From NCBI GenBank assembly GCA_965649765.1, contig OZ287749.1, forward strand, positions 76,322,001 to 76,386,000: a stretch of 64,000 nt of DNA. The letters are read 5' to 3'. Positions 860-49,076 of the stretch are shown in pieces. Numbering within the stretch: the first letter of the stretch is position 1; each line of letters starts with the position of its first letter. This stretch comes from Bispira polyomma. Its lineage: Eukaryota. The notes below the pieces were generated by a model. The model searched no databases and was not told the DNA's origin. It saw only the letters and a program-made list of their open reading frames with translations. Made by a program: the position numbers and the translations under genes.

Positions 860-1396
860 CTGGACACTCTTTCAAAAAGCATGGCTCCTGCTTGACAAAA
901 CCTCCCCGACATGGTTTACCACCATTATTGGACCTAGGTGCATTGGGCATTCTTCTAAAGGTTTGAGTACCTGCTCCACAAGTTTTACTGCATCCACCAA
1001 TAGCATTCCATGGCCCCCACACACAGTCCACTGTTTATATATACATATACAGTAAAACCTTTTTGTTCTTTTTGATTATTTTATATTTCACAATTTAGTA
1101 CATTAAGCAACATTTACATAGAAGAAGCACAACGGGTCTGTATGCAATTATGATTTCATAATATACATATATAACATAACTTTAGTTTATTTAATTTTTG
1201 GTTTGTATGGTCCAATCTACTTTTACAAACTTCACTCATTCTTTCACTCTACTCATTATTTTTCAGTCTATAAGGCATACTTCAATTTCCATTCTATCAG
1301 TTAGATGCCTGTAGAAAAAGGTATCAGAAATGAAATTAAACAGGAGAACCTGAACCAGTAGAATTTAGAATATGTTGGAAAAGCTAGATTTTTTTT

Positions 1397-1427
<31 letters not shown>

Positions 1428-16400: not shown

Positions 16401-17758
16401 GTATTGTATAATACAGTCTTACAGAACAATTCATGTTCAAAGAAAAAGCAAGTTTCTCAAGCGACTGAATTTTCCCTTATTATAGTACTCTTATAAATTA
16501 TTTTCATTTGCGAACACTCTGTCAACATTAAATATCTGATGTGCATAAAATAATACTATGCAGCAATAAATTACATTAATGATTTGAGTAACAGACGGAA
16601 TGGCAAATGTGGTATGATCTAGTGTTTTTACAATATATTAAAATGGACTTGCAGCAATTAAGGGTCTAGCATGGTCTTGGTCAACTATGCACAGCAATGA
16701 TTTAGAATAAAGCCAGGCTTTCTGATGATTTACGTAGGGCATACAAGGGGAGATACAATATTGTTAAAGTAACCATACTGACAAGGGGCAGTGGCAGGCA
16801 GGCTGTGTACAATAATAGTTAGCTATATAATTATATATATGTTGATGTAGTAAAGTACTACTTGGCCCATGCATGTATGTACTTAACCACATAATTTAAG
16901 TAATTATGTAAGAATGACGTTATTGGTGTCAAAGTTTAATGGTTGATATTTATCTACTTTATGTTAAAATCTCTGAATATATGCTCTATCTAAATATAAA
17001 TATTGTTACTTTAACACAAAAATTTAAAAAAAATGTTTTTGAAATGTTTACAAATAATATCTATGTTATAGGAGACACAAATTGAGATATGTCTTAATTA
17101 AATTCCAATAGTATTATAAAGCATCAAACTTACATGGGTTGGGGAATCTATGCCTTGGCCTTCCCTTGGAGCCATGAGAACCCTTCCCTCTTGCCTTCAT
17201 CAAGTCCTCCAGCACGTCTTGTTTCATTTTCTTCTCTTTTTTACTTTTACTCCAACTAGAACTACTACTTGAACTACTGCTAGATTTGCCGCCATCTTTG
17301 GATTTTCGACGACTTCCGCCGTCGTCATGATGACGTCCCTTTCTGACGTCACTATCGTGTTTCTTGTGGCTAAAAGAACTACTAGATTTGCTATGTTTAC
17401 TATGGACACTTTTACTGTGGTCCTTGTGATGTTTACTTTTGTCATGCTTTTCGTTATCTTTGTCATCCTTATGATAACTGGATTGAGCTTTTGGTGAGTA
17501 TTTTCCCCCACCTAATGAAGCGTGGTTGTCTTTATGGTTTTTACTTTTGCCATTCTTTTCTTTATCTGTGTCATCCTTATGATGACTGGATTTAGCTTTT
17601 GGAGAGGATTTCCCCCCACCCAATGAAGCATGGCCTTTTTTATTTGATTTTCCGCCTTTACTTTGATGTTGCCCTCTTTTTGCTGCAGATAATTCTATCA
17701 GTACTACTGCCAATATGACAGTTATTATCAGAAGGCGTACAGGTGACAGCCAAGACAT
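860..17758 (-). CDS. Secreted multidomain protein of the FCGBP/zonadhesin/tectorin-like VWD class: signal peptide, K/S/H-rich region, SUEL lectin, Cys-rich linker, VWD-C8-TIL-TILa, Ly6-like module, TSP1 (about 930-970 aa)
   Basis: Exons (minus strand): 17134-17758, 16181-16325, 15271-15518, 14113-14238, 11124-11368, 9700-9857, 8859-9005, 8129-8409, 7399-7601, 6177-6312, 5150-5277, 2872-3052, 860-1030. All have GT donors and AG acceptors and join in compatible phases. Motifs: signal MSWLSPVRLLIITVILAVVLIELSAA; SUEL lectin LCENQ..LKCP..NFGR..C / FGDPC..TYKYLEVEYVC; VWD CSASGDPHYKTFDG, GICGNMNGD, IGNSWKV; C8 DCSYDC..AAC..C..WR; TIL CP..SGCPATC..C..CVC..G; TSP1 DCVWGPWNAIGGCSKTCGAGTQTFRR..GGKPC. 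Confidence 0.85.
3116..3359. mobile_element. MITE with terminal inverted repeats (GGCCGTATTC-type family)
   Basis: CAGTGGCCGTATTCTC at the left end vs GAGAATATGGCCTCTG at the right end. Related TIR elements at 5611-5859 and about 9880-10011. Confidence 0.6.
3943..4709 (+). mobile_element. Solo LTR (767 bp) in an intron of the VWD gene
   Basis: Termini TGTTAC...GTAACA, perfect 5-bp TSD TGGTT (3938-3942 and 4710-4714), internal TATA (about 4134-4143) and AATAAA (about 4617-4622). Confidence 0.8.
5611..5859. mobile_element. MITE with terminal inverted repeats
   Basis: GACCATATTCACAAAAGGT vs ACCTTTTGTAAATATGGTC; internal palindromic CTTAAG-type repeats. Confidence 0.6.
5976..6134. mobile_element. 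Tc1/mariner (pogo/Tigger-like) MITE
   Basis: TA|CAGTAGAACCTCTAT left end, degenerate ATAGAGGTT right end, internal GTTCAGATAATAGAAG repeats shared with 9448-9640. Confidence 0.6.
9448..9640. mobile_element. Tc1/mariner (pogo/Tigger-like) MITE
   Basis: TA|CAATAGAACCT ... AGGTTCTACTG|TA: TIRs with TA TSD. Further degenerate copies at about 10055-10289 and 15765-15920. Confidence 0.7.
12572..13285. repeat. Diverged direct duplication of a ~170-200 bp AT-rich block in intron 4
   Basis: AATAAAA..GCTACACTGACAA.GTTTG..TTTT.TA.ATG.CACAT.ATCAGTCATAAAATC occurs at about 12575 and about 13125, both followed by similar ..AAATGTTATCACA. Confidence 0.7.
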
Positions 17759-24440: not shown

Positions 24441-24924
24441 GTTTGCTTAATAATTATGTTCAGCAATAGTTTTGAATGCCACAAAACATTTCTCAATCTA
24501 ATGAGATTTTTTGGTATTTTAGTCAAATATTTACAAAAATGTATACCTTGTATTGGGTTACCATCTTTATCTACCAAGGTACACAATGTACTTTGGTGAA
24601 GAATTTTATTTAAAACGTTTTAAGTATGATTGCTTTATTTGTCTTCCCTTAGTATTGACTGTATTGTCTAGAAACATCAACTAATTTAAATTAAATCATT
24701 TACAATCATTTGTCTCTTTTCACTTGACAATTTAAAACTGATACATTTTTTCATTTAAAATTGATGTATATTTAAAGTCCAATGTCTTCACATTTCAGTG
24801 TTGTAGTTTGTCACACTTACACACATATAATACTAATAATAGATAACTTCTTGGATGGCTCAAACTGTAATACAAAATAAAACACACACACAAATGGAAA
24901 TATGCTAAAATGTTCTGTATGACC

Positions 24925-25581
24925 TTAGTGTGGTGCGGCACCATTGTTGCACTTATCGCCATCACAGAAGCAGTAGATGGCACCACCTTGGTAATGACAT
25001 CCGGTCTTGTAGGGGTTCACACCAAACTCGCCCTTGTAGCAACCTCTGAAGATGTCTCCATTGGGGTCCTTTCTGACATAGCAGTTGCTGGAGCAGTCCC
25101 ATACATCAAGACCAAACATCTCTGCTTCCTGACCACTGAATGGGCCCATACACTTGTCCCAGCCTCCATTGATGGTGTAAGGCACAGGTACATAGGTTTT
25201 CTTCACATAGCCTCCCTTTTGTTGTCCGTAACTATTTTTCTGCTGCTGTTGTTTGTATCCACTCTGCTGCTGTTGCTGGTGTGGTTGTTGTCCGTAGCCT
25301 TCACTGGACTGGTGTCCGTATCCTTGCTTGTTCTCTGTACCGTATTCCTTGCCGTATTTTACAGACTCTACAACGATCTTTTTACCATAGTAGGTCTTGG
25401 GTGGAGAGTATGCACACTGGTAGCAATTCTTTCCTTTCTTCTTGTAGGTCTTGGGCTGGTCCCCATAGCCTACTTGCTGCCCATATCCTTCCCCTTCTTC
25501 TCCTCCTGCATTAGACTGGTATCCAAAGCCATAACAAATGTCAATGATTACAGCAAGGCAGAGGAGAACCAAACCTTTCAT
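24925..25581 (-). CDS. Secreted Gly/Tyr/Gln/Lys-rich Ly6/three-finger (Quiver-like) protein, copy 1 (218 aa)
   Basis: Intronless ORF; signal peptide MKGLVLLCLAVIIDICYG; 10 mature Cys in LU spacing (CYQC...C...CSSNC...RGC...C...CFCDGDKCN); conserved in three copies; upstream TATA. Confidence 0.9.
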   Translation of the reverse strand: MKGLVLLCLAVIIDICYGFGYQSNAGGEEGEGYGQQVGYGDQPKTYKKKGKNCYQCAYSPPKTYYGKKIVVESVKYGKEYGTENKQGYGHQSSEGYGQQPHQQQQQSGYKQQQQKNSYGQQKGGYVKKTYVPVPYTINGGWDKCMGPFSGQEAEMFGLDVWDCSSNCYVRKDPNGDIFRGCYKGEFGVNPYKTGCHYQGGAIYCFCDGDKCNNGAAPH

Positions 25582-25685
25582 GGTTGATGATGGTTTTTGC
25601 AGTGTTTTCTAAAATCGGTTAATGTATTGTGAGCTGTTTTCAAGTGACTAAACTGTTCCATGGTCTGTATTGAGTTGTGTGTTGC

Positions 25686-25692
25686 TTATATA
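25686..25692 (-). promoter_or_regulatory. TATA box of Ly6-like copy 1
   Basis: TATATAAG about 105 bp upstream of the ATG, inside a block (GTGGACATGCCACTGAGATGCTAACTACCAGTATATAAGCAACAC) identical in all three copies. Confidence 0.7.
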
Positions 25693-27107
25693 CTGGTAGT
25701 TAGCATCTCAGTGGCATGTCCACTTTGTAAAGAATGTGACAGTAAAAAACAAGTAGCCATTTTTCAACAAAAAACATGGTCAGCGTATTTAAGTCAACCT
25801 TAATGTACAGGATGGGATTCTTGTTAAATAATAAAGTATTTGTTTTGGATTATAATATAATTTAAATTTGGAAGCATGTGTAATATTGAAAAGATATTTA
25901 AAGATTTGAATATAAAATGTAATATGTAGTCAATGGAGGTATAAATAGTCCAATTGACATCATTTTAAGTAATGGTAATCTTAACTATGAGATATATTTG
26001 ACAAAGTGTAACTAGCTGCAACCAAGTAACACTAATGCAAAACAAGCCAACACAACCTGCTACTGATGAAAAACGTTCATAAACAAATCAAGACTAGAAT
26101 TAAGTCATTAACCATTCATTCAGATTACACCAAAACTTATTTGACATTTAATTTGGTGAAGGGATAGGGACATGGGCCAAAGAAGAATCCATTGAATTTT
26201 GGAGCGAATAAAGTTAGTAAGATAGTGGTATTAAAGTATTTTAAACTTTTTAGCAGTGTGCCATCTTTGTGGCAGTATGTGCTCTACTGAGTGTCCTAGT
26301 AGTTAAGCAAAATAACTGTCCTCTTCACTCATTCCTGAAGAAAATTATGAATATGAAATAATAAGTTTTTTCAGGTATAAGGTGATCAAAAAAAAAAAAA
26401 AAAATTATATTATGTGTGATTTCACTTATATTGATTTACCCAGAAATATCATAATTTCTGAACTTATACCAAAGAAAATAATATTTGCAAGAATAATTTT
26501 ACAATATAAATGAAAGAGGTTATAAGTTTAAAAATACCAGTAGCTATTAAAAATCTCTATGTGCTATAACTACATATATTACAATATATAAGTTTCATTT
26601 AGGTGTAAGGTAATTTCTTCTGCAATGTGTTAATTACAGTTAATTCAACTTAAGTCAAGTGTCATTTCCAAAAGCATGACCTTTTTCATAATGATGAATG
26701 TGGTGTACATACTTAATAGAGCCACTGGTGCAAAATATTTAACTGCACCTTTATATATGAATATGTGTGTGTACAGGTTTTGTAATGTATTTCTGTCTAA
26801 AATATCTACTAGTTAAGGTTATTCCTAAACTTAAAATTATGTCCATTAGGCTACTCATTTGTCCTGTCACTGCATATTACATATTTACATTCAATTGTTT
26901 TTAAATATATTTTGAATATTACACAAGCTTCCCAATATACATAATAGGTTGTAATCCAAAAAACGAATTAGTTAACAAGAATCACAGCCTGTACATTAAG
27001 GTTGAAGTAAATACTCTGACCATGTTTTTTGTGTTACAATGGCTAGTTGTTTTTTTACTGTCACATTCTTTGGCAAGTGGACATGCCACTGAGATGCTAA
27101 CTACCAG

Positions 27108-27114
27108 TATATAA
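27108..27114 (+). promoter_or_regulatory. TATA box of Ly6-like copy 2
   Basis: TATATAAG about 120 bp upstream of ATG 27233, in the same conserved block. Confidence 0.7.
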
Positions 27115-27232
27115 GCAACACCCGGCTCAACACAGACCACAAAACAGTTTTGTTACTTGAAAACAGCTAAGAAGTATATAATACACTACAAAACAGATTT
27201 AAGTAAACACTGTGCTAAAATCACCATCAACC

Positions 27233-27856
27233 ATGAAAGGTTTAGTTCTCCTCTGCCTTGCTGTAATCATTGAAGTTTGTTATGGCTTTGGATACCAGTC
27301 TAATTCAGGAGGAGGGGGAGGATATGGGCAGCAAGTAAGCTATGGGTACCAGCCCAAGACCTACAAGAAGAAAGGCAAGAATTGCTACCAGTGTGCATAC
27401 TCTCCACCCAAGACCTACTATGGTAAGAAAGTCGTTGTTGAGTCTGTAAAATACGGCAAGGATTACGGTACAGAGAACAAGCAAGGATACGGACACCAGT
27501 CCAGTGAAGGCTATGGACAACAACCACATCAGCAACAACAGAAAGGAGGCTACGGACAGCAAAAGGGAGGCTATGTGAAGAAAACCTATGTACCTGTGCC
27601 TTACACTGTCAATGGAGGCTGGGACAAGTGTATGGGCCCATTCAGTGGTCAGGAAGCAGAGATGTTTGGTCTTGATGTATGGGACTGCTCCAGCAACTGC
27701 TATGTCAGAAAGGACCCCAATGGAGACATCTTCAGAGGCTGCTACAAGGGCGAGTTTGGTGTGAACCCATACAAGACCGGATGTCATTACCAAGGTGGTG
27801 CCATCTACTGCTTCTGTGATGGTGATAAATGCAACAATGGTGCAGCACCTCACTAA
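27233..27856 (+). CDS. Secreted Gly/Tyr/Gln/Lys-rich Ly6/three-finger (Quiver-like) protein, copy 2 (207 aa)
   Basis: ATG at 27233 in ACCATG context (the ORF-track start at 27212 is non-ATG); same signal peptide and Cys framework as copy 1. Confidence 0.9.
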   Translation: MKGLVLLCLAVIIEVCYGFGYQSNSGGGGGYGQQVSYGYQPKTYKKKGKNCYQCAYSPPKTYYGKKVVVESVKYGKDYGTENKQGYGHQSSEGYGQQPHQQQQKGGYGQQKGGYVKKTYVPVPYTVNGGWDKCMGPFSGQEAEMFGLDVWDCSSNCYVRKDPNGDIFRGCYKGEFGVNPYKTGCHYQGGAIYCFCDGDKCNNGAAPH

Positions 27857-30364
27857 GGTCATAAAGAAGATTTTAGCATATTGTCCTTCTTGTGTGTGTT
27901 TCTTTTTGTATTACAATTTGAGCTATCCAAGAATTGATCTATTATTAGTATTATGTTTGTTCAAGTGTGACAAACTACAACGTTCCACTGTGAGGACATT
28001 GTACTTTTACTTTTCATCAAGTTTAAGAGAAAGTGTATTAGTTTTATAATATGTAATCAAATTATCAGGTGAACAGAGACAATTACTTCAAAATAATTGA
28101 GTGTCTATCAAATTTGTTGATTTTTCTAGACCATATGGTCAATACTAAAGGAACACCCACAAAGCACAAAGCAATGATACTTAAACTGTTTGATACCATA
28201 AAATGAAAATGAAATTCTACGCCAAAGTATATTATGTCCCTTGGGAGATAAACAAGATAACCCAATACAAGGCATAAATATATTATATATTTACGAAACA
28301 ATCATATTAGATTGAGAAATGTTTCGTGGCAAATAAATTCATGTCTAAACATGCTATATTGATGAGCAAAGAGGCTTAATATCCAAGGGACACATTTATT
28401 GCCTGGGAATTTTCATTCATTTTAAAATATCTCAAACTTATGCAATGTTTTAGGGGTTTACTTGTTTATATATTACTATTGATTTGTTGTTGAAAGTATA
28501 CTTTTATATCTTGTATGTTTCATCAATTTAATAAATTACATTAAAACTTGGTAGAATTCAATACAATACATGTGTCATACTTTTGTATACTTCATTGACT
28601 TTTTTGTGTACTCTTATTAATATTAGTGTTAAATAAATCAGCAAAGTGTATGTGCAGATTGACACTTTCCAAGGCTATAGATATATCTATAGAGCCTGTA
28701 CTGAGCAGCTATTATTGTCTATACCTATTACTTCTATAGAGCCACAATCGATAATTCGGAATCCGCTGCCGTGCACATCACAATCACTATGCAAAGGAAT
28801 AGTCAGATCGGAGAAAAAGTCTGTGATCAGAGTTCAGTCGTGACCAGTAGGCGAAATTGAATAGAAGAGCAAGTTGATTATACTGTTTGTTTGCAAACAC
28901 CTAAAGTACGGCCAGGGGGCAGACTAAACCTCTAAAACATGTCGTGTGACCTTGTTTGGACCAATACTCAGGCTTTTTGAACCACTAACTCAATCTGAAC
29001 CAAGGAACACTAATGGGATAGAGTCATCAACTCTGATAGCTAACTAAACGTCCCAGATATATAATTGTAACATAGTATGCAGTCTCCAATGGTTAGTGAG
29101 TTGGTCTGGTGATCAGATCAGATTGTTAGGGAAGTTAGTCACAAGTTAATCACAAATGCCCTGGTTCGACTTCTGCTGACGGCTCTTGGTTCATTGGTGG
29201 AATAACATACTTTGGCAGGATGTGAACTAGCCAGAGCCTACTCATGAGACTGAGACTATGTTTTTTTAACTTTTTTGGACAGACATAGATCACAAACCTC
29301 TTAATCATCTTCCAATTGGTATACCATCTAAACAATGAATTTATGTCTTATGACATGCACATTTCAACCAATCATTCACCTATAATGTTAGACTGCAAAT
29401 CTTGGAATTTCCTTTTTGGCCAACTTGATTGCTTAAATCATATTCATCGGTCGATAAAATAGGATAAAAATAAATAACAATCTTTGTGAATACAACCCAA
29501 AATGTTAAGAATATCATGTATTGTAAGGAAAAAATGACTGACGATATAACAAAAAATATCTGCGTTTATAGCAAAATCCTATAATATAACAAAAATGCCC
29601 TATATTATAACAAACTTTAATCAAATTTCTATGACCTGTGGATAATCTGTGTATAAACACGACTTGAATAAATTCTGAAGAAAAAAGTGATTACACAGCA
29701 CCCATGTATACGTCATATGAATGAATATGACAAGGAAAAGCTTCAAAACACAAACATCAAGCTCCGGGACATATGGGTGTTCACATGTATATATTTTTGA
29801 GACATTTGTGGTAGTAAATAAAAACCCTGCTGTCTGATATATGTCATAAAATTTAAAAATTAGAAATCAATTTTGCTAAAAGCCTGTTCAAAATCATATT
29901 TTGGTTGAGAAAACCTAGGCATAACAAAAACAACAAATCGTTCAATAGTTTTATTATACAGCTGTACCATACAACTTGCAGCAACTGTGATGATATTCAC
30001 AATGCAGTGGCCAAGTCGAAGTTCTCTTAAACTGTACAAATTGAATTTCTGTACCTGATGCTAGGCTAAATAGGGCATTATGTGGAGGAGAACTGTCGAG
30101 AATCAGGAGTTTCTTTAAAATTAATAGTCCCAGTCGAACGATTTGAGGCAATTCTATGACTCAAACTGCTGAAACCTAAGGTGACAGCAACAAATTGTAT
30201 TTTTTAGTGTTGTTCAAAGTTTGAATCTCCAAAAACACATACCCATTATATATATAAATAAAGGTAAGATGATAAAATTTTATTTAAATTTAATTTTATA
30301 TATAATTTTGATGAATAAATGTAATATGTATTTAAAAGTTAATGAATATGATGTACCAATGTAA

Positions 30365-31179
30365 AGTGGTGGTTCCATATTCAAGTTAGATTGGCAAAAT
30401 GGGCTCGATTTTAAAGTCGAAAAGGTTGGGCGGAAAAAGACAGGAAAATGAAAATGTGGGGCGACTTTCCCGATCAAATTGATTGCGCCCCGTGTTGACG
30501 GGACATCTACCACGATCGAACTTGAGGTCTGTACTAAAACTTCCCCGGTGCTCCCCAACCTAGGTTAAGATCGAACTTACTGGCGATAGAATCTGACGAA
30601 TCAGCCTAGGATCAAATATGATCTGACAGATTCATATCCCCGACCATAAGGATCAAATTTCTGAAAAGTCAAAATGTGCTAAAATATAAGAAAAAATAAC
30701 TTTAGACCACATTTTTGATGAAAGTTTGTTGCAAAAACGTTTTATCGTTCATAAACTGCACCGGAAGTGGGTTTGATGTCGCAAAGGTAAACAACTGTTA
30801 AACTGATGTCTGTTATCGGGACTATTATGGTAAAATATCTGACAAAATGGGTTTAAATAACAAGTTATGTGTTTTCAAACATATATTCTTCCCGACCTTC
30901 CAGACCACCCCGTTTTCACCCCTCGACCAATTCGTTTGAACTGGCCAGTGATAGGACAGGCCTGGAGTGAGATAAGACCAATCAGTCAGAACATAATGAC
31001 AATCCAATGGAACTTATTCGCCAAAGCGGACCTTCCCGTTTTTAGAGGTCGAATATTCTTCTTAACCTTCCCGACCACCCCGTTTTCGCCCCCTGATCTA
31101 TACATATCGCCGCTTTTCCTGTTATCGATCACAAAGTCGGGATAGTCGGGGACCAAATCCTGATAGTGAAACCACCATT
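30365..31179 (-). mobile_element. Non-autonomous internally deleted derivative of the PIF/Harbinger family at 44.4-49.6 kb
   Basis: TIR AGTGGTGGTTCCATAT / ATAGTGAAACCACCATT flanked by TAA/TTA. 30365-30660 matches the reverse complement of 49270-49597, and 30880-31100 matches the reverse complement of 44440-44510. Confidence 0.8.
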
Positions 31180-31304
31180 TTAATTTGAACTGACAAATTT
31201 ATTAAACAAGGTCATTCATTAAATGAACTAATAGAAATGCATTTGCACATGAGAACATGGCTCCTTAATCCTTCTCAAAGCATGTCCTTTTTAGTGCACG
31301 TTGT

Positions 31305-31934
31305 GGCCTGGTCACCCCTACATGTGCTAACGTCCCTCAATGTAGCAAAGCATATAAACTAAAAACGTGGGAGCTTCGTGTCAAAGTGACGTCATTTTCA
31401 TAAAGGGGGAGTCGATTGTGAGGTTTTTGTGACGTTTTATGATGTTCCGTGACGATGTTGGTACTTGTACACACGAAGAGGAGGCAAAAAACGGTCCCTT
31501 AACTGGTAGGGTATAACTACCTACAACTAGGTAGAGCTAATGTACTGCTACTTACGGCTGCATTCTGCTGCCTTCTGCTACTTAGTGAAACTTTTGCGAC
31601 TAACGGAGACGATCTCACTATTTACTGGGACTTCCTCGCTACCTACTACTACATATAGCTACTTACTGATACGTCTATGCTACTTTCGGAAACGTTCAGG
31701 GACGAACAGAGAAACGGGGAGAAATGGGAGCTGTGACTGTAATGTTTCAAACAGTTTGAAGCAGTACACGAAAAAGACGAAACGGAGACGTTTCCGGAAC
31801 GATATCATCTGTCGCAAAACGTAAAGAAACAATCACAGAAGGGATCCTTACTTCCTACTATGTTTCAAAACGTTTCTAAAATTAACACAACGTGACACAA
31901 ACTTAGCTCCAGAATGTGTAGGTGTGACCAGGAC
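31305..31934. mobile_element. MITE with TIRs (Harbinger-type ends)
   Basis: GGCCTGGTCACCCCTACA vs TGTAGGTGTGACCAGGAC (16/18 inverted match). Confidence 0.6.
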
Positions 31935-32643
31935 ATAAGTGAGCATTAGTGGATATTCATCAGTGAACCTCTCAGATTGTGAAAAATTGTTGGTGAGTTA
32001 TGTCCAATTATTAATACATTTTCATAAGTCTGTGTTGCTCGGTAAAAAATGGTTACAATTAGGGAATGTGTATTCATTGCAATTTGTATAAAAATGTTGT
32101 GATTTTATCTCATATTAATGTCGTGATTGTGTCAATAAGCATCAGTTAGTGACCATTCGTTGGTATTAGTGAGGATTTGTTGCAAGTTGTATCACAAATG
32201 GGCAGTTAGTCGGGATTAGTGGGAAATTGTGTACAAAAGCCATAAATACTGGCAATGCTGCCATTATTGAACAAACTTCTGTGCAGAGCAGATGTAGTCT
32301 TAAAAAAATTGTATTTAAATTTTAGAATTGCCATCCATTTGGGTTCCTATCCCTTGAACACAGGTTGACACTTCGTGATATTTGTACTGGCTTGTGAACT
32401 GTTAGTCTGGGTCACAACAGAAGTGACTTGAGGCTTCACTCTTCCTACCTCTGGTGACATGCTGACCTTCCTCTTTGACTCTGTTTAAAAGTTCCTTTGT
32501 TTCTGGCTTTGTTTCATCTCCTGAAGAGTTATATTGTGGGTGTGTGCCTGTGGAACACTGCTTGGAGCGCACCACCCCCTCATCTGCTACTCCTAATGGG
32601 ATTTCGCCTCAGATGTTTCTCATAGAATGGGCAACCATGGTTA

Positions 32644-33890
32644 TGTAAACAACAAAAATTACTTAGCTCTGCTGTAAACTTATAAAGAGGATTGAAGCAG
32701 ATAGAGGGTCCCGGTCCAGATCAATTCGGGTAAATTTCAACCCTCCTTCAGAGGTGGTTTGAAGCAGATTGAGCCAACCCTCTATGTAGTGTGAACGCTC
32801 TCAATCCGGGTTGAGTGGGGTTACAATGGGGAGTACTGTAAAGTTTGAGATTTAAGCTGGGTGGGCTTGTATAGATCGAATTCATCACTGTTTTAGAGAG
32901 AAAGGCTTTTCTGAAATGGGGCATATTGAATTCGTGGTGGATTACTGTTTTTTATAAAGCTTAACTTCTTTGGTGGGAAGTATAGTAAAGTGTATACATT
33001 TTAATCAAGGAACATCAAAATTGTAATCAAATAAACTGTGTTAAATAAAATAAATTACATTTTTAATTGGGCCTTATTCAATTAGTTTTTGGTGATTAAT
33101 CTTTGTTCAAGCTTAACTTGTTTGATGTAGCTTAATTACACAAATAGAAACTTCTTATGTTTTATTGCTATTCGCCTTTTGCTCAGGTTTAAGGGACTGA
33201 CACAAATTACTGTAAATATTCTGATTCATTAGAACAAATCAAATTTACCTTTTTCATAGTTTTGTGTAAAACATTGCTTATCAATGAACTAAGGAAATTA
33301 ATTTCCCCCATAAAACATTTTATTTAACTAACAGATATATGACCCCACACAAATATACACGGTTTTACTGTATTTAATTCTCAACACCTGCCCCATAAAA
33401 CAGCAAGTCTTTAAACCCCAGATTATGTTTTCTAGTCTGGACACTAAACCCGGATTCAGCTTAATCCGGTTCGATCCCGAATCTGGGTCAATCGGGATTA
33501 GTCTAAACAGGGCCTTAATAGTCCAGCACATTAACATTTGAGCTAAAGGGGAAACCCCCAAAGCCTGAGTGTTTAATGCACTGATACACACATATATTAC
33601 ATGTCTCTCCCCCTACAAAGACCTGACCACAGGTCTTATATACTGCTACCACATTTATTCTATTAACTTACTTGGCTTATGAGAGGGGGATCTTACAACT
33701 GAACTCCAATCTGTAAACAACAGAAGTTACTTAGCTCAGCTGTAAACTTTAAAAAGGACTTGCTACTGCTGGAATTCGATCCTGGGCTGTCATGGATTTT
33801 GAAATTAATAGTCCATTACACCAACAGTTGAGCTAAAGATGAAACCAAAAAACTGGAGTGTTTAATTCACTGATATACACGGATATTACA
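32644..33890 (-). mobile_element. Miniature non-autonomous LTR retrotransposon (TRIM) with tRNA-like sequence in its LTRs; 3' LTR interrupted by a truncated DNA-transposon fragment (about 32692-33514)
   Basis: LTRs TGTAA...TTACA at 33712-33890 and 32644-33601 (split); 4-bp TSD GTTA on both sides; 110-bp interior with a TGG-starting PBS-like site (33708) and PPT AGGGGGAGAGA (about 33604-33614); A-box/B-box-like motifs in the LTR. Confidence 0.75.
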
Positions 33891-34567
33891 GTTATAATGT
33901 GACAACTGATCTCGGCTGAGTAATTGAACTCTATCTGTGCCATATGCAGGGGTATGCTATGGAATTTTGATTTAGGGGGCTGTATTACTTAGCCATGTAA
34001 GGAACTTAAGTGTTAGGCTAGAATGTGGCCTGGCCCTGATACTTTAATATATCGGGACTGAACTTAAAAATTGTGTATTGGGAGGTGGCTTTAGCCAGCA
34101 TGCTCATCGGGGGGTGAACCTTAAAACTCCACCACCATAGCCCTGGAAAGATTACTTCAAGAAAAGCATTTTGTTTTGACAACAAGTGTAATATTATTCT
34201 TAATTGGTTAAAACACTCTCTACAAATCTCATTGGTTGACCTTGTGGGTCACTGCTTGTGTTGTGGGTATTTTCCTCACTTTGAAATTACAAACTGAGGT
34301 ATCAACAGCTGTAGTCTGCTTAAATTGGACGCCATTGTACTATTTTAACATTTACAAACTTTTTAGTTGTGATACTGGACTATTTTATCATTTATTGGAC
34401 TGTTCAAGTGTTTTATGATTGATACACACATTCATTTGTACGTGGTAAGTGTTTTATAGTGACAGTGCAGGAGACAAAGTATATTGAACAATATAGTTTA
34501 TCATGGTCCGGTCCGTCAATGTATATGTTGCTGTATTTTATATACAAAGAAATGAACAGTAAATTGC

Positions 34568-35838
34568 AGGGTAATCATAGATCTGAGTTGGCCGGAAGGT
34601 GGTAGTGTAAATGGGGGTGTCCTGAAGGACTCCTACTTAGGTACCAAATTTATCCTTACATTTCCTTCAGTTGATAATATAGTAGAGCAAGTGAAGTCCT
34701 TTGGAAAGGGCTCACATATATACAAGATAGATATTTCTAGGGCATTTAGGCATGTCAAGATAGATCCCAAAGACTATGATTTGTTAGGCCTCTACTAGAA
34801 AGACTTCTATACTGACACATGTCTTCCCTTTGGGTCTAGGCATGGTAGCCAGATCTTTCAGAGAATTAGTGATGGAGTAAGGTATATCATGAGTAAAAAT
34901 AACCACAAGATTATCAATTATATTGATGATTTAATAGGCTGTGGTGTACCCAGCAAAGCTAAGGCAGCGAATGACTTCCTGTACCAATTACTAGGTGAGT
35001 TAGGTCTTACCATCAGTGCAAAAAAGTTAGTTCCACCAAGTACACAATGCATATGTTTAGGAGTACTAATTGACATTGTACAAGGTACCATTTCTATTCC
35101 TGTAGACAAACTAGAAATCAAAGTCAAAACTTGTGCCACTTGGTAGGATTTTGAGGTAACCACAAAAAGAAAACTGCAGTCATTATTAGGTTCTCTCTTA
35201 TATGTCGCAAAATGCTGCAAGCCAGCTCGCATTTTCCTGAACAGAATGTTGACTACTCTTAGAGCTGCTAGTAATCCGAAGCGTATTGTACCAGATGAAG
35301 AATTCCACAGGGATGTTAATTGGTTTCAGTCTTTTGTAGCTCAGTACAATGGTGTCACCTTCTTTAACCACAAGCCGGTGGCTGCAGTCATTGAATTAGA
35401 CGCATGTTTAACTGGGGTAGGGGCCAGGTATGGGGATAGGTTATACACTCTACCAATTCCCCAGTCCATCCAAAGTATCGGATAGTCAGACTAGAAATGG
35501 TAAATATTGTGGTGGCTTTGAAGGTGTGGGGTAGTTACTGGAAAGACAGCAAAGTGGTTATCCGTTCTGACAATAGTGCAGTAGTATCAGTGTTAAACAC
35601 AGGTAGGACTCGAGACAAATACCTTGCAGCTTGTGCAAGGAATGTATTTCTCCTTACAGCTAGGCACAACATAGACTTAAAGGTAGTGCACATTTTAGGC
35701 ATTAATAATGCAGTGGCTGATACACTATCCAGGTGGATGGGCTCCAAATCTCAGTGGCAAATAATAAACAGGCATGTTAATGATCCTGTTTGGTGTGACC
35801 TTAAGCAAGAGGCCTTCCACCTGGATTGGTCCATATAG
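34568..35838 (+). pseudogene. Reverse transcriptase / RNase H of the YR retroelement (disrupted)
   Basis: RVIIDLSWP, YKIDISRAFRH, LPFGSRHGSQIFQRISD, NYIDD, LQSLLGSL, IELDACLTGVG, IRSDNSAVV, NAVADTLSRW; stops at about 34796, 35144 and 35483 plus a frameshift before 35497. Confidence 0.9.
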
Positions 35839-35869
35839 ATTAAACATTATTGTAGGTACTACTCCAGTC

Positions 35870-36835
35870 ATGAAGGCCCTGACCACTGGTGCCATTGGGA
35901 GGCTCACAGGAGCATTCAGGCCGTCTACACAACGAGCCTATACGGCTATGTTTAGAAACTTCTTAGGGTTTTGCTGCTTCACAGCTATTTCAGTGCATAG
36001 AATTACAGTCCATGTCTTATTGGCATTCATGGAATTCTTGGCCTACAATAAGACCTCTCCATCTCAAGTGGCCAATTACATGGCAGCTATTAAGTCCAGT
36101 TTATCAGTATATAGCCTACCAGTTCATGTGTTTTCGGATAATAGGATCAAATTGTTCCAAAAGTCATTGTTACTAAACAGACCACTCACTGTAAAAATGA
36201 AAGGCATATTCCAAGTGCAGGACTTGGAAAAAATTGTCCAGTTGTCTGACACTATGTTTATGGGTCAGGTGTATAAATCCATTTATTTGTTAGCATTTTT
36301 TGCTTTCTTTCGTATTTCAAATCTAGTTCCACATGCAAATGAACCATTTGATCCATCGGTTCACTTGGCCAGAGGAGACATCTTTTTTGCTCCACCAGGG
36401 CTGCAAGTACTACTGAAATGGTCAAAGACCATGCAATCAAAGAATAAGGTTCAGCCAATTAAAGTTCCCTCACTAGGTGGGTCTCCAATATGTCCTGTAA
36501 GTGCAGTAAAAAATGTATTGTCCCTTACATCTGGGGGAAAAAATCACTAGTTATTCCAGATTAAGAAAGCAGGTGGTTGGAGTCCACTAAATGATAACAT
36601 GGTTAGGCAACATTTAAAGAAAGTGGTATTGGCTTTAGCGCTAGATCCTTCTACTCACCCCTTTCATACCTTCAGGCATTCAGGTACCACCTTGGCATTC
36701 AACTCTAACGTTCCAATACAACAGATCCAAAAACATGGTACCTGGACGTCTGATTACGTCTGGAAATATATTGTAGACACCCAGGACTCGGCTACCCAGG
36801 TGGCTACTACCTTTCAAAATCTACTTTCTCAATAA
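35870..36835 (+). pseudogene. Tyrosine recombinase of the YR retroelement (one in-frame TAG at 36548-36550)
   Basis: FFRISNL (R), KWSKT (K), CPVSA, HTFR (HxxR), HGTW, WKY (catalytic Y); ORFs 35774-36550 and 36599-36835 are in the same frame. Confidence 0.9.
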
Positions 36836-38279
36836 TACTACCACTAGTTTGGTTGTTTGGTGGTTATTTATTTATGTTCTACTACTACGGTCTAATATAT
36901 CTTAAACTTTACATGTATAACTATTAATTCATAATGTACTACATAAGTACAGCTCTGGTTAGGTAACCAGAATAATTGTATACTAAAAATAATAGAACTT
37001 ATATATATACAGTATACTAAATATTAAGAACTAAAAATGCATGTATCGGCACCAGGTTCATCTTATTCAAATCAAACATCTTAAAATAAAATTTCAAATT
37101 TAATTCATATCAAAAACTTTCAAAATCAAACATTTTAAATCTTGACTAATTATATATATAATAATTCATAAAATTGGGAAGCTGTTGGCTTTAAGTTAAG
37201 GCTCCCTCATACCTATGAGGTCACCTTAGCTTAAATAGAATAAGTAATATGGTGTGTAACTGTAACATAGTTAATTATTAATATACTCACAATTGGCAAC
37301 AGGTACCTTGCATTAATTCATTAAACTCAAAAATTTTACAATTTCAATTAAGTAATTTCTAATTCCCATTCTCAAAACCCATGGTACCTGATGCCCTTGT
37401 TAGGGTGACCTTAGTCATTTAAGGTCACCCTACAAATGTTTTGTGTTGTACATAAAATGTAGTAGTAGTAAAATAAAATTTTATACCCGCAATACTCAGT
37501 GTACTCACTGGTCACTCAAGGTCACACATAGACTGTGCCTATGTTATAAAAGTTTAACTGTTATTGACAGAGTTTATTTTAAAAACTTGTTTCTTATCAC
37601 TTTTTAATGTTGTTTTAGTAATTTTTTCCTTGGGACCGACATGTTTCACAAAATTATGTTGCAATATCACTTTCTGCAAAAACAATTCTTTATTTAAAAC
37701 ATATAGTACTCATCTAACCTAATATGCTCCCTACTGTTTTTTTTTATTAATTCCGACTTTCACATCTATTTCCTGAAACCTTAAACTATAACTTGACTGA
37801 CAGCCTTAAAAATACCTAGGGTAACCTTACTAATAGGGTAATTGGGGTTCTTAAATTTAAAATAGTTTATGATTTTAGGGTGAAAGTTTAGGCGACCTTA
37901 AACTTAGTTTAAGACTACCTTAAAGGATTTTTATCTGAATAAATCTTGCTTTTTATATATTCAGCTTCGAATATCAGCACTGTTAACTTGGATGTTTATA
38001 TAGTATAATAGTTTTAGGATTGTGTGTTTGTAAATAAAATGTTATATTCCGCAATCTTGTCTTTACCCTGTGTTGGAACCTTTGGCCTAGAACTGGGAGA
38101 AAGCTCTGAATCCAGCCTTCCTGGTGGATGCAACAGAGAAAACAAAAAGTCCATTACCTCTCTTCAGGTTACTGAAAGAACAAAGAAAAGCAAGGTAGCA
38201 GGTTGTTGGGCCACAACAGTCTTGAAAATGTTGACATGGATTGTTGTTTTTTGGTGTATGGAGTGACATCGGTATCAGT

Positions 38280-39150
38280 GCTCAAGCAAAAAATGACCCT
38301 TTATAGATAGCTTGGAATGGATTGACTTATTAATCCAAAAGGGAATCACAGTAGTCAAGGCAATTACTTGCAAGGGCAATACCCACAATTATAGCAGTAT
38401 CTAGTTACAAATGGTTTCTGATTCCTATGATATCACAAAAGTGATAATAGCAGGAGCAACAGATGTGACCAATATGGGTATTAGAAAGTCAAAAGTGACA
38501 CCAAGGTTCTTGGCATTATCAGAAGGCATTATATATTTACATAGAAGAATCATGATCTTATGTGTATGAAGGGTATAAAGTTGAGGGCCGAGGACAGAGC
38601 CCAGGGTTACTCCTTGTGGCAAGTTGAAAGAGGATGAGAAGTGATTATCTAATTTAGTTGTTTTGCTCTGAGAGTGAGATAGGATTTGATCCAATCAAGG
38701 ACAGTGCCATTGAGTCCAAACTATTATTTGAGGGTGTCAAATAATAGTCCATGGACAATGGCGGGTGAGAGATCTAAAAGAGTGAGCAAAACTGTTTTGT
38801 CATGATCCAAGGTAAGGTTTATATTGTTACTAATGAAAAGGGGCACTTTCTGTTTATTGAAACTTTCTGTAAGCAGATTAGTGACAGTTTGCAATGCTGT
38901 GTGTGTTGAGGCGGTCAAAGATTTGTTGTGCAACAGTTCTCTCGATATAAAGCTGAGATTGGATGCTGGTCTATAATTTTTAGCTGGTTTTTGTCAAGCC
39001 CTGTTTTTTTTTTAGCAAAGGAGCAACTTTACCGATTTTGCAACATGACGGAAAAATACCATGATAAAGTAATAAATTAATCATGTTGGTTATAGGTGTG
39101 ATAAGAATCTCGAGGTATTTATTCAGAATAATGGCCAGGACAAGATGTAA
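38280..39150 (-). mobile_element. L2/CR1-clade LINE reverse transcriptase remnant
   Basis: Fragments KNYRPASNLSFISR, LLTLLDLSPA, GVTLGSVLGPQLY, AKNLGVTFD in the expected order, with deletions and frameshifts. Confidence 0.8.
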
Positions 39151-40346
39151 TTCGCAGGATTTTCTAGAAAAGGCTATAATGAGTTTTAATATGCCATTCT
39201 CTAAAAGTGTGTGGAAATGGAATATATTAAAAACTTTGTAGCCCTGGCTAAGTTGCTTATTTTGTCAATAAAGAATTTACCAAATTTATCTGCTAAAAAT
39301 GTGAGGCAGTGATTGAACTTTTTTAAATGTAAGGTGAATAATTCTGTTTATTTAGTCCCAGAATGACATGTTATTGAGGCCATTTGGACTATAGGTATTT
39401 ACTTTGGATATTTGGCAACAGAATATTTGACAATAAGTGATTTTCCCCACAATAAACAGAAAAATAAATGGGTATAAGTGGCAAGTCGTGGCTCTTATGG
39501 ATATCCCTATAACCTTAGAACGGTGTGCCAATCTGTAGATATACAATCATATAACCAGTGTTTCTAAAACTAAAAAGAAAATCCATACATTTGCTGATTT
39601 ATTTAATACTAATAATAATAAAAGTATACAAAAACAGTGTTGTACAAAAAAGATGACACATGTAATCTATTAGATTCTACCAACGTTGTAATGGAATTGT
39701 TTAAATTGATGAAACATACAAAATATCAAGGTAAACGTTCATTACCAAATCGATAGTAATAAAGAAAAATAACCCCAAAAACATTCCATAAATTGATATC
39801 TTAACACAACTAAATATTGCCAGGCAGTAAATGTATCCCTTCCATATTAAGGCTATTTGCTCAATAAATACAGCTTGTTTAGCTATGACTTTAAATCCGA
39901 CAAAACTGTTATCAATAAAACACGATATTTTGGTCTTTTGGTCAGATTTATCTACAAAAGAACACAATATACTTTGGTGTAGAATTTAATTTTTATTTTA
40001 TGTAAAAACTGTTCAAGTATCATAGCTTAGTATTTTGTGGGTGTTCTTTTACTAGTGATCATATGATCTGTGGACATCAACTAATTTAAATCCTCAAACA
40101 CATTCAATTATTTTCAACCATTCTTCTCTTTTCACTTGACAATTTGATTACATAATATAAAACAAAAACACTTTCTTTTAAAATTGATGCATACTAATGT
40201 CTAATGTCCTCCCATTCCAGTTTGTAGTTTGTCACACTTACACACAGATAATAAAAACAATATATAGAAACTTGGATGGCTTAAATTGTAATACAGAAAA
40301 ACACACACACACATTATAATAATATCCTTAAATCTTCTGTACGACC

Positions 40347-40982
40347 TTAGTGAGGTGCGGCACCATTATTGCACTTATCGCCATCACAGAAGCAGTAGAT
40401 GGCGCCACCTTGGTAATGACATCCGGTCTTGTAGGGGTTCACACCAAACTCGCCCTTGTAGCAACCTCTGAAGATGTCTCCATTGGGGTCCTTTCTGACA
40501 TAGCAGTTGCTGGAGCAGTCCCATACATCAAGACCAAACATCTCTGCTTCCTGACCACTGAATGGGCCCATGCACTTGTCCCAACCTCCATTGACAGTGT
40601 AAGGCACAGGTACATAGGTTTTCTTCACATAGCCTCCCTTTTGCTGTCCGTAGCCTCCTTTCTGCTGTTGCTGATGTGGTTGTTGTCCGTAGCCTCCACT
40701 GGACTGGTGTCCGTATCCTTGCTTGTTCTCTGTACCGTATTCCTTGCCGTATTTCACAGATTCTACAACGACTTTCTTACCATAGTAGGTCTTGGGCGGA
40801 GAGTATGCACACTGGTAGCAATTCTTGCCTTTCTTCTTGTAGGTCTTGGGCTGGTATCCATAGCTTACTTGCTGCCCATATCCTCCCCCTCCTCTTCCTC
40901 CTCCTCCTGAATTAGACTGGTATCCAAAGCCATAACAAACTTCGATAATTACAGCAATGCAGAGGAGAACCAAACCTTTCAT
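40347..40982 (-). CDS. Secreted Gly/Tyr/Gln/Lys-rich Ly6/three-finger (Quiver-like) protein, copy 3 (211 aa)
   Basis: ATG at 40982-40980; near-identical to copy 2; flanks 39600-41730 homologous to the flanks of copies 1 and 2. Confidence 0.9.
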   Translation of the reverse strand: MKGLVLLCIAVIIEVCYGFGYQSNSGGGGRGGGGYGQQVSYGYQPKTYKKKGKNCYQCAYSPPKTYYGKKVVVESVKYGKEYGTENKQGYGHQSSGGYGQQPHQQQQKGGYGQQKGGYVKKTYVPVPYTVNGGWDKCMGPFSGQEAEMFGLDVWDCSSNCYVRKDPNGDIFRGCYKGEFGVNPYKTGCHYQGGAIYCFCDGDKCNNGAAPH

Positions 40983-41088
40983 TGTTGATGATGGTTTTTG
41001 CACAATGTTTACTAAAATCGGTTAATGTATTGTGAGCTGTTTTCAAGTGACTGAACTGTTTTGTGGTCTGTGTTGAGTTGTGTGTTGC

Positions 41089-41095
41089 TTATATA
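41089..41095 (-). promoter_or_regulatory. TATA box of Ly6-like copy 3
   Basis: Same conserved promoter block as copies 1 and 2. Confidence 0.7.
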
Positions 41096-42054
41096 CTGGT
41101 AGTTAGCATCTCAGTGGCATGTCCACTTTGTAAAGAATGTGACTGTAAAAAACAACTAGCCATTTTACAACAAAAAATATGGTCAGAGTATTTGAGTCAA
41201 CCTTAATGTACTGGCTGTGATTCTTGTTAACCTATTCGTTTTAGATTACAACCTATTATGTATATTGGGAAGCATGTGTAATATTGAAAATATTTTAAAG
41301 AATGTAAATATAAATATGTAATAGATAGTGACTGGAGGTATAAATAGTCAAATGGAGATAATTTTAAGTTTAAGTGTACCCTTAACTATTAGATATATTA
41401 GACAGACATGTAATAGCAAACCTGTACACACACACTCACACATATTCATATATAGGTGCAGTTAAATATTTGGCACCAGTGGCTCTATTAAGCATGTACA
41501 CCACACTCTGTTACATAAACATGAAAAAGGTCGTGCTCCTGAAAATGGTGTCTGACTTGGCTTAAGCTGAATTAACTGTAATTAACACATTGCAAAAGAA
41601 ATTACTTTACACTTAAATTAAACTTTTGTGTTGTTATGTTTGTAGTTATCACAGAGAGAAGTAACAGCTTTTGGTATTTTTTAACTGATAATCCCTTTCA
41701 ATAATACTTTATAATCATTCTTGAAAATGTTATTTTATTTGGTGCAACTTACAAAATTGAGGTATTTCTCTGTGGAGAACTAAGGTGACCTTAAGCTGGT
41801 GGAACTGTGGTCTGTCTATGAATGACAGTAAATGACTGTAGCAATCGAGGTTTTTGGTACATGGCCAGAATGTCAAATAAATGTGTAGTTCTATTATCAT
41901 GCACTCCTCGATTTGCACAGAGAAGAGGAATGTGTCTGTGTAACAGTTCTACTGAAAATAAAAAAGGATACATGTTGTATTTAATATATATAGGGCTAGC
42001 CTTGTAAAAGGCTTAACGTGGTAACTATAGTCAGCTTTTTAAAACTACATTCAT

Positions 42055-47819: not shown

Positions 47820-49076
47820 AACTCTTTCCTCTTGCCACGGGACTACCCCCTCATTCATAAAAAAGTCCATTAACACGTCCCTCTGTTCTTTGGCTGCCCT
47901 GGATGGGTTTTTGTGGGTGGTCGGTCGATTTCCAAGTAACTACACCTCGGGTTCAGGTGGATCATCTTGTGGGTTGGGGTGCTCTAGTGTTAGGTTTCTA
48001 CACCGGCTTCTCAGTATGTTATGTAATATCACACACGTCAATATCAGATTTGAGGCCACTAGGGGGTGCTGTTGCATCATCGTCAGTAATAGGCAGAAGC
48101 GGCTGGCCAAAATCCTAAAAGCATTCTCCACTACCCGCCTTCCCCTGGATATCCTGTAGTTACAAATTCTCTGTGCATGGGTGAGTTCCTTCCTCGAGTA
48201 GGGTTTTATCATCCACGTTTTCAGAGCAAAGGCGTCGTCCCCCACCAGAAAGTATTTCACGTCACGTCGAGACCCCTCAAACAGTGGTGCAGGTCTGGGC
48301 AGCCCAATGGATCTATCTTCTATCTTCTGCTTGAGCTCTGAGTGGTTAAAAATTTGGGTGTTGGAACAGGAACCACTACAGCCAATGTCCACCCAAATAA
48401 ATCTGTAGTCCGCATCAACCAGGGCAAACAGGACAATGGAGTGGAAGCCTTTGTAGTTGTAGAATTCGCACCCAGCCTTGGGAGGCTTCTTGATGGCCAC
48501 GTGCTTCCCATCGATAGATCCAACAGCATGAGGGATATTCCACCTGTTCCTGTAGACTTCTTCTATTTTCAGCCAGTCTGCGGGGGTGGTTGGGCAGGCT
48601 AGATTTTCTGTCTCATATTCCCTAATGATGGTCTTGCATACTTCTGGTATAAACTTGGTGATAGATGATTTCCTAACCCTGAACTGGTAGGACAGGGACC
48701 TGTAGCTCTCCCCAGTGGCCAGGTGCCTCAAAGTTACAGCCAGTTTCAGTCCAACATCCAAGGGCTTTCTGAACCAAGTTATTTCTTTTTTCACATGGGG
48801 TGTTATCCTATCCTTGATTTCGTCAAATATATCAGGTGGTAGCCTGAAAAAATTCCTGTATGAGGCTGCATCCCCTTCCTGTACCTCCGGCACTAAGTTT
48901 GTGTAGTAGCCTAGGGTCTCTCTCTGACCGATCCAAGGCTTGACCCAGCAGATGGGTGACATACGTGGAAGTCTAATCTTCTGCGGGGGAGCCCAAGAGG
49001 CGCGTGGTGGTGTTGAGTTCAAATCTTCCTGAGCCTGAGCCTGAGCCTTGTCTTTGTCATGTTGTAATATAAGCAT
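47820..49076 (-). CDS. HARBI1-like DDE transposase (frameshift near the C-terminus)
   Basis: KLAVTLRHLATGESY, GSIDGKH (D), YNYKGFHSIVL, LVGDDAF (D), NYRISRGRRVVENAF (E), CVILHN; tail EQRDVLMDFFMNEGVVPWQ is in another frame. Confidence 0.9.

Follow-up and report, generated by a model that had tools for sequence, protein, structure and literature searches.

Why should the first finger of a small secreted protein be as long as a complete Ly6/uPAR (LU) domain, which normally comprises 60-90 amino acids (aa) in all (PMC13719153)? The question is raised by three genes in a stretch of 64,000 nucleotides from Bispira polyomma (assembly GCA_965649765.1, contig OZ287749.1, positions 76,322,001 to 76,386,000 of the forward strand; hereafter, the window), whose products carry 78 or 87 aa between the second and third cysteines of an LU-like frame. 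Our analysis indicates that they are members of an apparently undescribed family of secreted, stalked three-finger proteins found in annelids and in the brachiopod Lingula, in which finger I is predicted to be an extendable rigid β-ribbon. As to function, we regard it as about evenly balanced whether they are structural proteins of a tanned chitin/protein secretion, with chaetae as the first candidate and the tube wall or cuticle as the next.

Three intronless genes for secreted ten-cysteine proteins

The first-pass annotation of the window described three intronless open reading frames (ORFs) for secreted proteins with 10 mature cysteines, Cys2-Cys3 gaps of 87, 78 and 78 aa and no glycosylphosphatidylinositol (GPI) signal. 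All of this was confirmed, and the ORF list of the window shows the three frames to be free of stops or interruptions. The features of the locus are the following, in window coordinates.

24925-25581, minus strand: copy 1, intronless ORF of 218 aa; Cys2-Cys3 insert of 87 aa
27233-27856, plus strand: copy 2, intronless ORF of 207 aa; insert of 78 aa; head-to-head with copy 1
40347-40982, minus strand: copy 3, intronless ORF of 211 aa; insert of 78 aa
27233-27286, plus strand: copy 2, hydrophobic signal peptide, aa 1-18 (from hydropathy; presumed cleavage)
27287-27382, plus strand: copy 2, Gly/Tyr/Lys-rich N-terminal segment, aa 19-50, variable across the family
27383-27409, plus strand: copy 2, start of the LU core, Cys1-Cys2 and conserved YSPP motif, aa 51-59
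27410-27451, plus strand: copy 2, predicted outgoing strand of the finger-I stalk, aa 60-73 (DSSP E16-29 of the AlphaFold model)
27452-27568, plus strand: copy 2, predicted disordered Gly/Gln/Tyr/Lys tip, aa 74-112 (pLDDT of the block, 45-59; composition)
27569-27610, plus strand: copy 2, predicted returning strand of the stalk, aa 113-126 (DSSP E69-82 of the AlphaFold model)
27611-27853, plus strand: copy 2, LU core Cys3-Cys10, aa 127-207, with zero amino-acid changes among the three copies
27104-27116, plus strand: TATA-containing block upstream of copy 2; all three copies have the same sequence here, and the orthologue of another species a similar one
25684-25696, minus strand: TATA-containing block upstream of copy 1
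41087-41099, minus strand: TATA-containing block upstream of copy 3
24477-28652, no strand: inverted duplication with copies 1 and 2 (self-BLAST, 24477-26003 against 28331-26794, 82% identity)
39584-41769, minus strand: duplicated block with copy 3, 82% identical to 26442-28652

The duplicated blocks that carry the copies measure 1.5-2.2 kb and share 82-84% identity by self-BLAST. The TATA-containing block lies about 120 nt upstream of the ATG and is recognizable in the other-species orthologue, P0001. Antisense ORFs overlapping each copy were rejected as genes, being shadows of the coding strand.

Of the 12 cysteines encoded by each copy, two fall in the hydrophobic N-terminal segment; the other 10 belong to the mature chain, where the spacing is C-x2-C-x(87/78/78)-C-x18-C-x3-C-x13-C-x13-C-x8-C-x-C-x4-CN for copies 1/2/3. 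The chains stop seven residues past Cys10 with a hydrophilic end, and hydropathy is elevated only in the first ~20 residues and never exceeds 0.3 thereafter. This pattern suggests that the proteins are secreted with neither a GPI nor a transmembrane tail, the cleavage site being a prediction.

Recounting confirmed the 22 Tyr noted earlier among the 189 mature residues of copy 2, which also comprise 20 Lys, 35 Gly and 17 Gln. The content of Tyr is thus 11.6% and that of Lys 10.6%, with a net charge of +8. Ten of the 22 Tyr are in flexible parts (five in the N-terminal segment, five in the tip) and 12 in ordered parts, several of them at positions that are aromatic throughout the family.

The proteins probably adopt the three-finger fold

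We modelled residues 45-207 of copy 2 with AlphaFold, using an alignment of 40 rows, and obtained a mean predicted local distance difference test (pLDDT) score of 83. In a wide structural search with this model, the top 38 rows were all three-finger toxins, Ly6/uPAR proteins or TGF-β-receptor ectodomains. The best row had a Z score of 6.7 over 66 aligned residues (root-mean-square deviation (rmsd), 3.6 Å), and the first unrelated row had a Z score of 2.4. Among the structure neighbours in the Atlas, Quiver (QVR) and the nematode Ly-6_related family came first, in agreement with the fold proposed by the first-pass annotation. The Atlas feature search with copy 2 was LU-like too, with scores only up to 0.78. 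Foldseek returned nothing with E <0.001 for the copy 2 model, and a search of PDB sequences with the family profile gave no match. The model of a relative with a longer insert, P0028, also had an LU head in the structural search.

Pfam assigned the window proteins to no family, be it Quiver, CBM_14 or any other. Of 24 relatives with shorter loops, 21 matched Quiver (PF17064) below threshold, with a best E value of 4.2e-5 and at most 24.6 bits, the gathering cut-off being 27.3 bits. Cysteine pattern, profile and predicted shape thus agree in pointing to the LU/three-finger superfamily. The nearest known families, Quiver (PF17064) and nematode Ly-6_related (PF06579), have the same 10-Cys pattern ending in C-x-C-x4-CN, a signal peptide and the same fold; the window proteins differ from them by the absence of a GPI tail and of a Pfam match, by a finger I of 78-87 aa and by a helix after Cys3, which is short in the copy 2 model.

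Eight cysteines are invariant in the family alignment. By analogy with the LU canon, the disulfides would pair 1-5, 2-3, 4-6, 7-8 and 9-10; relative P0034 lacks Cys7 and Cys8 jointly, which fits the 7-8 bond. The Cys1-Cys10 span of 150 aa is due to the stalk, and without it the core is of normal LU size.

Finger I is predicted to be an extendable β-ribbon

The long gap had been taken for a giant, disordered lasso of GYGQQ and QKGGY repeats. In the copy 2 model, its flanks (residues 60-73 and 113-126) form instead an ordered antiparallel hairpin of 14 + 14 residues (pLDDT of the blocks, 88-96), and disorder is confined to residues ~74-112, a tip of 39 residues. At 3.4 Å per residue, we estimate that the stalk would be about 5 nm long. 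The two motifs do occur, but only two to three times, and they do not make a true repeat array.

Nor is the loop giant by the standards of the family, in which the Cys2-Cys3 gap ranges from 11 to 312 aa, the window copies being mid-sized. The long inserts are highly charged and enriched in Val, Thr, Glu and Lys. They carry a Val-rich repeat of ~10 aa (autocorrelation of 0.21-0.38 at lag 10), with a V-[PS]-[RK] motif every ~10 residues and a high β propensity; the window copies do not have this repeat. In P0028, the whole insert of 117 aa was predicted to be a continuous hairpin of 51 + 51 residues (pLDDT of the blocks, 80-91). These models suggest that finger I is a rigid β-ribbon that can be extended, and that the window proteins have a short version of it capped by the Gly/Gln/Tyr/Lys tip. 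A test of the inserts for mirror symmetry was mostly not significant. In relatives P0033 and P0035, the stalk contains an extra pair of cysteines. Such a pair would pin the ribbon together halfway along its length and speaks for the predicted register of the hairpin.

Articulins and alveolins, as well as the valine-rich shell proteins of molluscs, also carry V-P-x repeats. The ~10-residue motif of the long relatives may be comparable, but it is inserted in an LU finger.

An apparently undescribed family

Homologue searches gave 20 matches with a word-based method and 115 with full HMMER. All homologues with a species name are from annelids (Paralvinella, Capitella, Owenia, Pectinaria) or from the brachiopod Lingula, and at least one long-stalk member is from a marine metagenome. 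Many members are poor in Tyr (3.8-5.5%) or acidic (net charge down to -14), and aromatic residues are conserved in the family core. The tree, based on few columns, resolved little beyond small clades, and long inserts occur in at least two weakly placed groups.

One of the matches is the 'CM3 protein' of Pectinaria gouldii (AHA44498.1, UniProt V5L1P4; E = 4e-41), which shares the cysteine frame and motifs with the window proteins (40% identity over 203 columns) but has an insert of 47 aa with an almost absent tip and is more acidic. We could not trace the meaning of its name in the literature, and found no paper characterizing it.

In a more distant sister branch, finger I is short; behind it come a CBM_14-like domain and repeats rich in Tyr, Pro and Lys. 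The assignment of this domain as chitin-binding is weak but consistent: the Pfam E values for CBM_14 are below threshold (0.0016-0.005), all 10 Atlas neighbours belong to the same family or clan with a score of only 0.82, and UniRef labels the Capitella member as chitin-binding type-2. In Owenia, the P0124 cluster comprises at least six near-identical genes of this LU + CBM_14-like type on three chromosomes, a recent expansion.

The B. polyomma genome (1.035 Gb, 75 contigs) holds two sister-branch genes on contig 1, as well as a distant gene on contig 12. The first sister-branch gene (39480306-39487577, minus strand) has a short-loop LU domain, then a long exon, then a CBM_14-like exon; the long exon encodes ~16 decamers of the PSYKS type, resembling those of mussel foot protein-1 (mfp-1). 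The second (74780692-74785006, minus strand) consists of several exons and also combines an LU with a CBM_14-like domain.

The view that the window proteins represent no named family was borne out both by Pfam and by our literature searches, which found no report of them in a collection thin on subscription journals. For annelids and brachiopods, a 2026 survey covering 387 invertebrate genomes reports LU proteins of ordinary type and of receptor-kinase type only, and makes no mention of a stalked architecture (PMC13719153).

Selection and origin of the copies

Between the copies, dN (nonsynonymous substitutions per site) was 0 over a core of 89 residues, versus a dS (synonymous) of 0.13-0.23. 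Comparison of the copies with P0001, which is intronless as well, gave a dN of 0.07-0.09 and a dS of 1.6-2.1; for core and stalk, dN was 0.015-0.04 at a dS near or above 1. These values suggest that the copies are functional genes under strong purifying selection. The unchanged core, the conserved TATA-containing block and the dozens of homologues indicate that the ORFs are not due to chance.

A close paralogue is present on contig 12 (27378958-27384667, minus strand; ATG at 27384667, stop near 27378958), with four coding exons and three coding introns. We compared it exon by exon and omitted it from the family tree. Its last exon and copy 2 share 93% identity, and, unlike the window copies, it encodes a processing site, REKR, after the signal peptide. 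Two of its introns, those before Cys1 and after a D-x-N-G motif, have counterparts in the Paralvinella and Owenia genes, and all three are absent from the window copies and from P0001. Introns are therefore ancestral and were all lost by the window copies. The simplest reading is that the latter look like the product of an old retroposition, before the split from the species of P0001, followed by local triplication. No poly(A) remnant or target-site duplication was found within 500 nt downstream, but at a dS of 1.6-2.1 such marks are expected to have decayed. No synteny with the contig of the orthologue emerged, the sole shared flank being noncoding.

The tip of the contig 12 paralogue is shorter than those of the window copies. 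At the start of the intron that follows its stalk exon, the end of the exon together with the GT donor is repeated in tandem ~5 times, in units of 47 nt; 47 is not a multiple of three.

What the stalked proteins may be for

A structural extracellular role, as proposed initially, is still the most likely class of function. In the mechanism that we envisage for a tanned chitin/protein secretion, a disulfide-rich LU head would bear the rigid antiparallel ribbon of finger I, predicted to end in the Gly/Tyr/Gln/Lys tip. The invariant, aromatic-rich head would bind a conserved partner, either chitin or another head, and the ribbons would pack side by side or along fibrils, acting as spacers of set length. 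Tyr and Lys residues of the tip and of the N-terminal segment may then be cross-linked by a tyrosinase or a peroxidase, tanning the matrix, while the three copies would raise the dosage in the secretory cell.

We favour such a hardened secretion because a Val-rich ribbon of variable length suits packing or spacing better than receptor binding, because all named hosts make chitinous chaetae (annelids and brachiopods being the two groups that have them), and because the sister branch combines a chitin-binding-type domain with tanning-type repeats. There is also a precedent in insects: Retroactive, a 10-Cys three-finger protein with conserved aromatics, is required for cuticle chitin (PMC3561106). 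It differs from the window proteins, which are stalked and have no anchor, by its C-terminal hydrophobic segment, its link to Knickkopf trafficking and the lack of a stalk. It was not among the matches of the family searches, which included no orthology test aimed at it.

Several points weigh against this assignment. Pfam detects no chitin-binding domain in the window proteins themselves, and the paper on Retroactive doubts that this protein protects chitin directly (PMC3561106). The structural Z scores are modest (6.7-7.0), and AlphaFold can over-regularize Val-rich repeats to long hairpins. Only a minority of the homologues carry a species name, so that the range of phyla given here is provisional. 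Furthermore, searches by gene identifier, accession and motif, extended to supplementary files of work on annelid chaetae, tubes, single cells and larvae, found no paper or supplement naming any member.

A more specific version, which is possible but which we put forward tentatively, is that finger I is a telescoping ribbon (~5-50 nm, from the number of residues) that determines spacing or fibre geometry within the chaetal chitin matrix. The family would then be a protein component common to annelid chaetae and brachiopod setae, with the LU fold serving as a material instead of a ligand.

The best surviving alternative, which we find rather doubtful, is a tube cement or mucus glue of the 3,4-dihydroxyphenylalanine (DOPA) type, in which the LU head would stabilize a basic chain rich in Gly, Tyr and Lys; once hydroxylated to DOPA, this chain would form coacervates with acidic phosphoproteins. 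The composition and charge of copy 2 would suit this role, and polybasic GY-rich proteins are a main class of sabellariid cement proteins (PMC4275877, PMC12621633). The family includes the CM3 protein, whose name might allude to cement, from a builder of cemented tubes, P. gouldii, several named hosts are tube builders, and the genome contains the mfp-1-like decamers of the first contig 1 gene. What 'CM3' means is documented in no paper that we found, however, and to our knowledge Capitella and Lingula, in which members are present, make no grain-cemented tube. Sabellariid Pc-1/Sa-1 (GY-rich) and mussel Mefp-1 are, like the window proteins, secreted, basic and rich in Gly, Tyr and Lys; but cement precursors of this kind are highly repetitive chains of low amino-acid diversity, whereas the window protein is predicted to fold into a disulfide domain, with ~75% of the chain ordered, an invariant core and a single short tip of low complexity. 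The analogy with mfp-1 was not supported either. The window proteins contain no tandem decapeptide array of the Mefp-1 type, and SPPKT occurs once in copy 2, at the base of the stalk, in an ordered and conserved segment; of 57 family proteins, 26 have retained SPP[KR] after Cys2, among them Tyr-poor ones. The Tyr-poor or acidic composition of many relatives also argues against a glue. If a DOPA substrate is to be sought in this genome, the contig 1 gene with the decamers is, from its sequence, a better candidate than the window genes.

In most known LU proteins, the fingers serve to bind receptors (PMC13719153), and the window proteins are secreted and have a cationic tip. They might hence be soluble ligands (receptor modulator, pheromone, or immune or antimicrobial protein) with a finger I lengthened to reach a recessed site, like the stalk and knob of ultralong cattle antibodies. 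We consider this unlikely, since the near-invariance of core and stalk is the wrong type of selection for recognition, the tip is of low complexity, and inserts of 200-312 aa made of Val-rich decamers would make little sense in a ligand. Least probable is that hairpins of several subunits close into a β-barrel tube or pore, in the manner of aerolysin-type proteins or of the collars of phage tails: the top Foldseek rows of the long-stalk model are indeed long-hairpin assemblies (lysenin pore, phage tail; E ~1e-3), but their TM scores of 0.09-0.2 and rmsd of 13-41 Å denote shape-only matches to any long hairpin, and the long inserts are highly charged and show no alternation of hydrophobic residues of the kind seen in membrane barrels (lag-2 autocorrelation of -0.14 to -0.28). 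A hollow tube in soluble form is conceivable, though improbable.

Neighbouring sequences in the window

Just downstream of copy 1, one or more multi-exon genes (860-17758, minus strand) encode a secreted mucin-like mosaic with a signal peptide, in which a Ser/Lys/His-rich first ORF of 214 aa (17114-17758) is followed by SUEL lectin, VWD, C8 and TIL domains and a Lypd6-like LU exon. A degenerate DIRS-like retrotransposon (34799-36835, plus strand), with pieces of reverse transcriptase, RNase H and tyrosine recombinase, lies between copies 2 and 3. Further on, we found an intact ORF of 384 codons for a Harbinger/PIF-type DDE transposase (47940-49094, minus strand; DDE_Tnp_4, E = 4.5e-29). Two intronless paralogues of ~490 aa (52399-53886 and 60522-62006, both minus strand; 71% nucleotide identity) carry at the N terminus a domain resembling P-loop GTPases, with weak matches to septin and MMR_HSR1, and contain 16-17 Cys. 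A 60-nt tandem array of ~10 copies with 91-94% identity occupies 62855-63465.

Implications

The roles known for three-finger proteins are those of receptor ligand, toxin and membrane regulator. A finger I that varies 30-fold in length as an ordered β-ribbon would be a structural use of the LU fold, of which we found no description. Whichever the location, chaeta or tube, these proteins would provide a natural disulfide-anchored scaffold of tunable length. If they were located in tube cement, they would represent a cement protein with a fold, in contrast to the known cement proteins, which are repetitive. If they were located in chaetae, they would be a named, testable component of the protein matrix of the bristle, which is poorly known, and would allow a direct molecular test of the homology of annelid and brachiopod chaetae, a question stated to be open (bioRxiv 10.64898/2026.03.09.710468).

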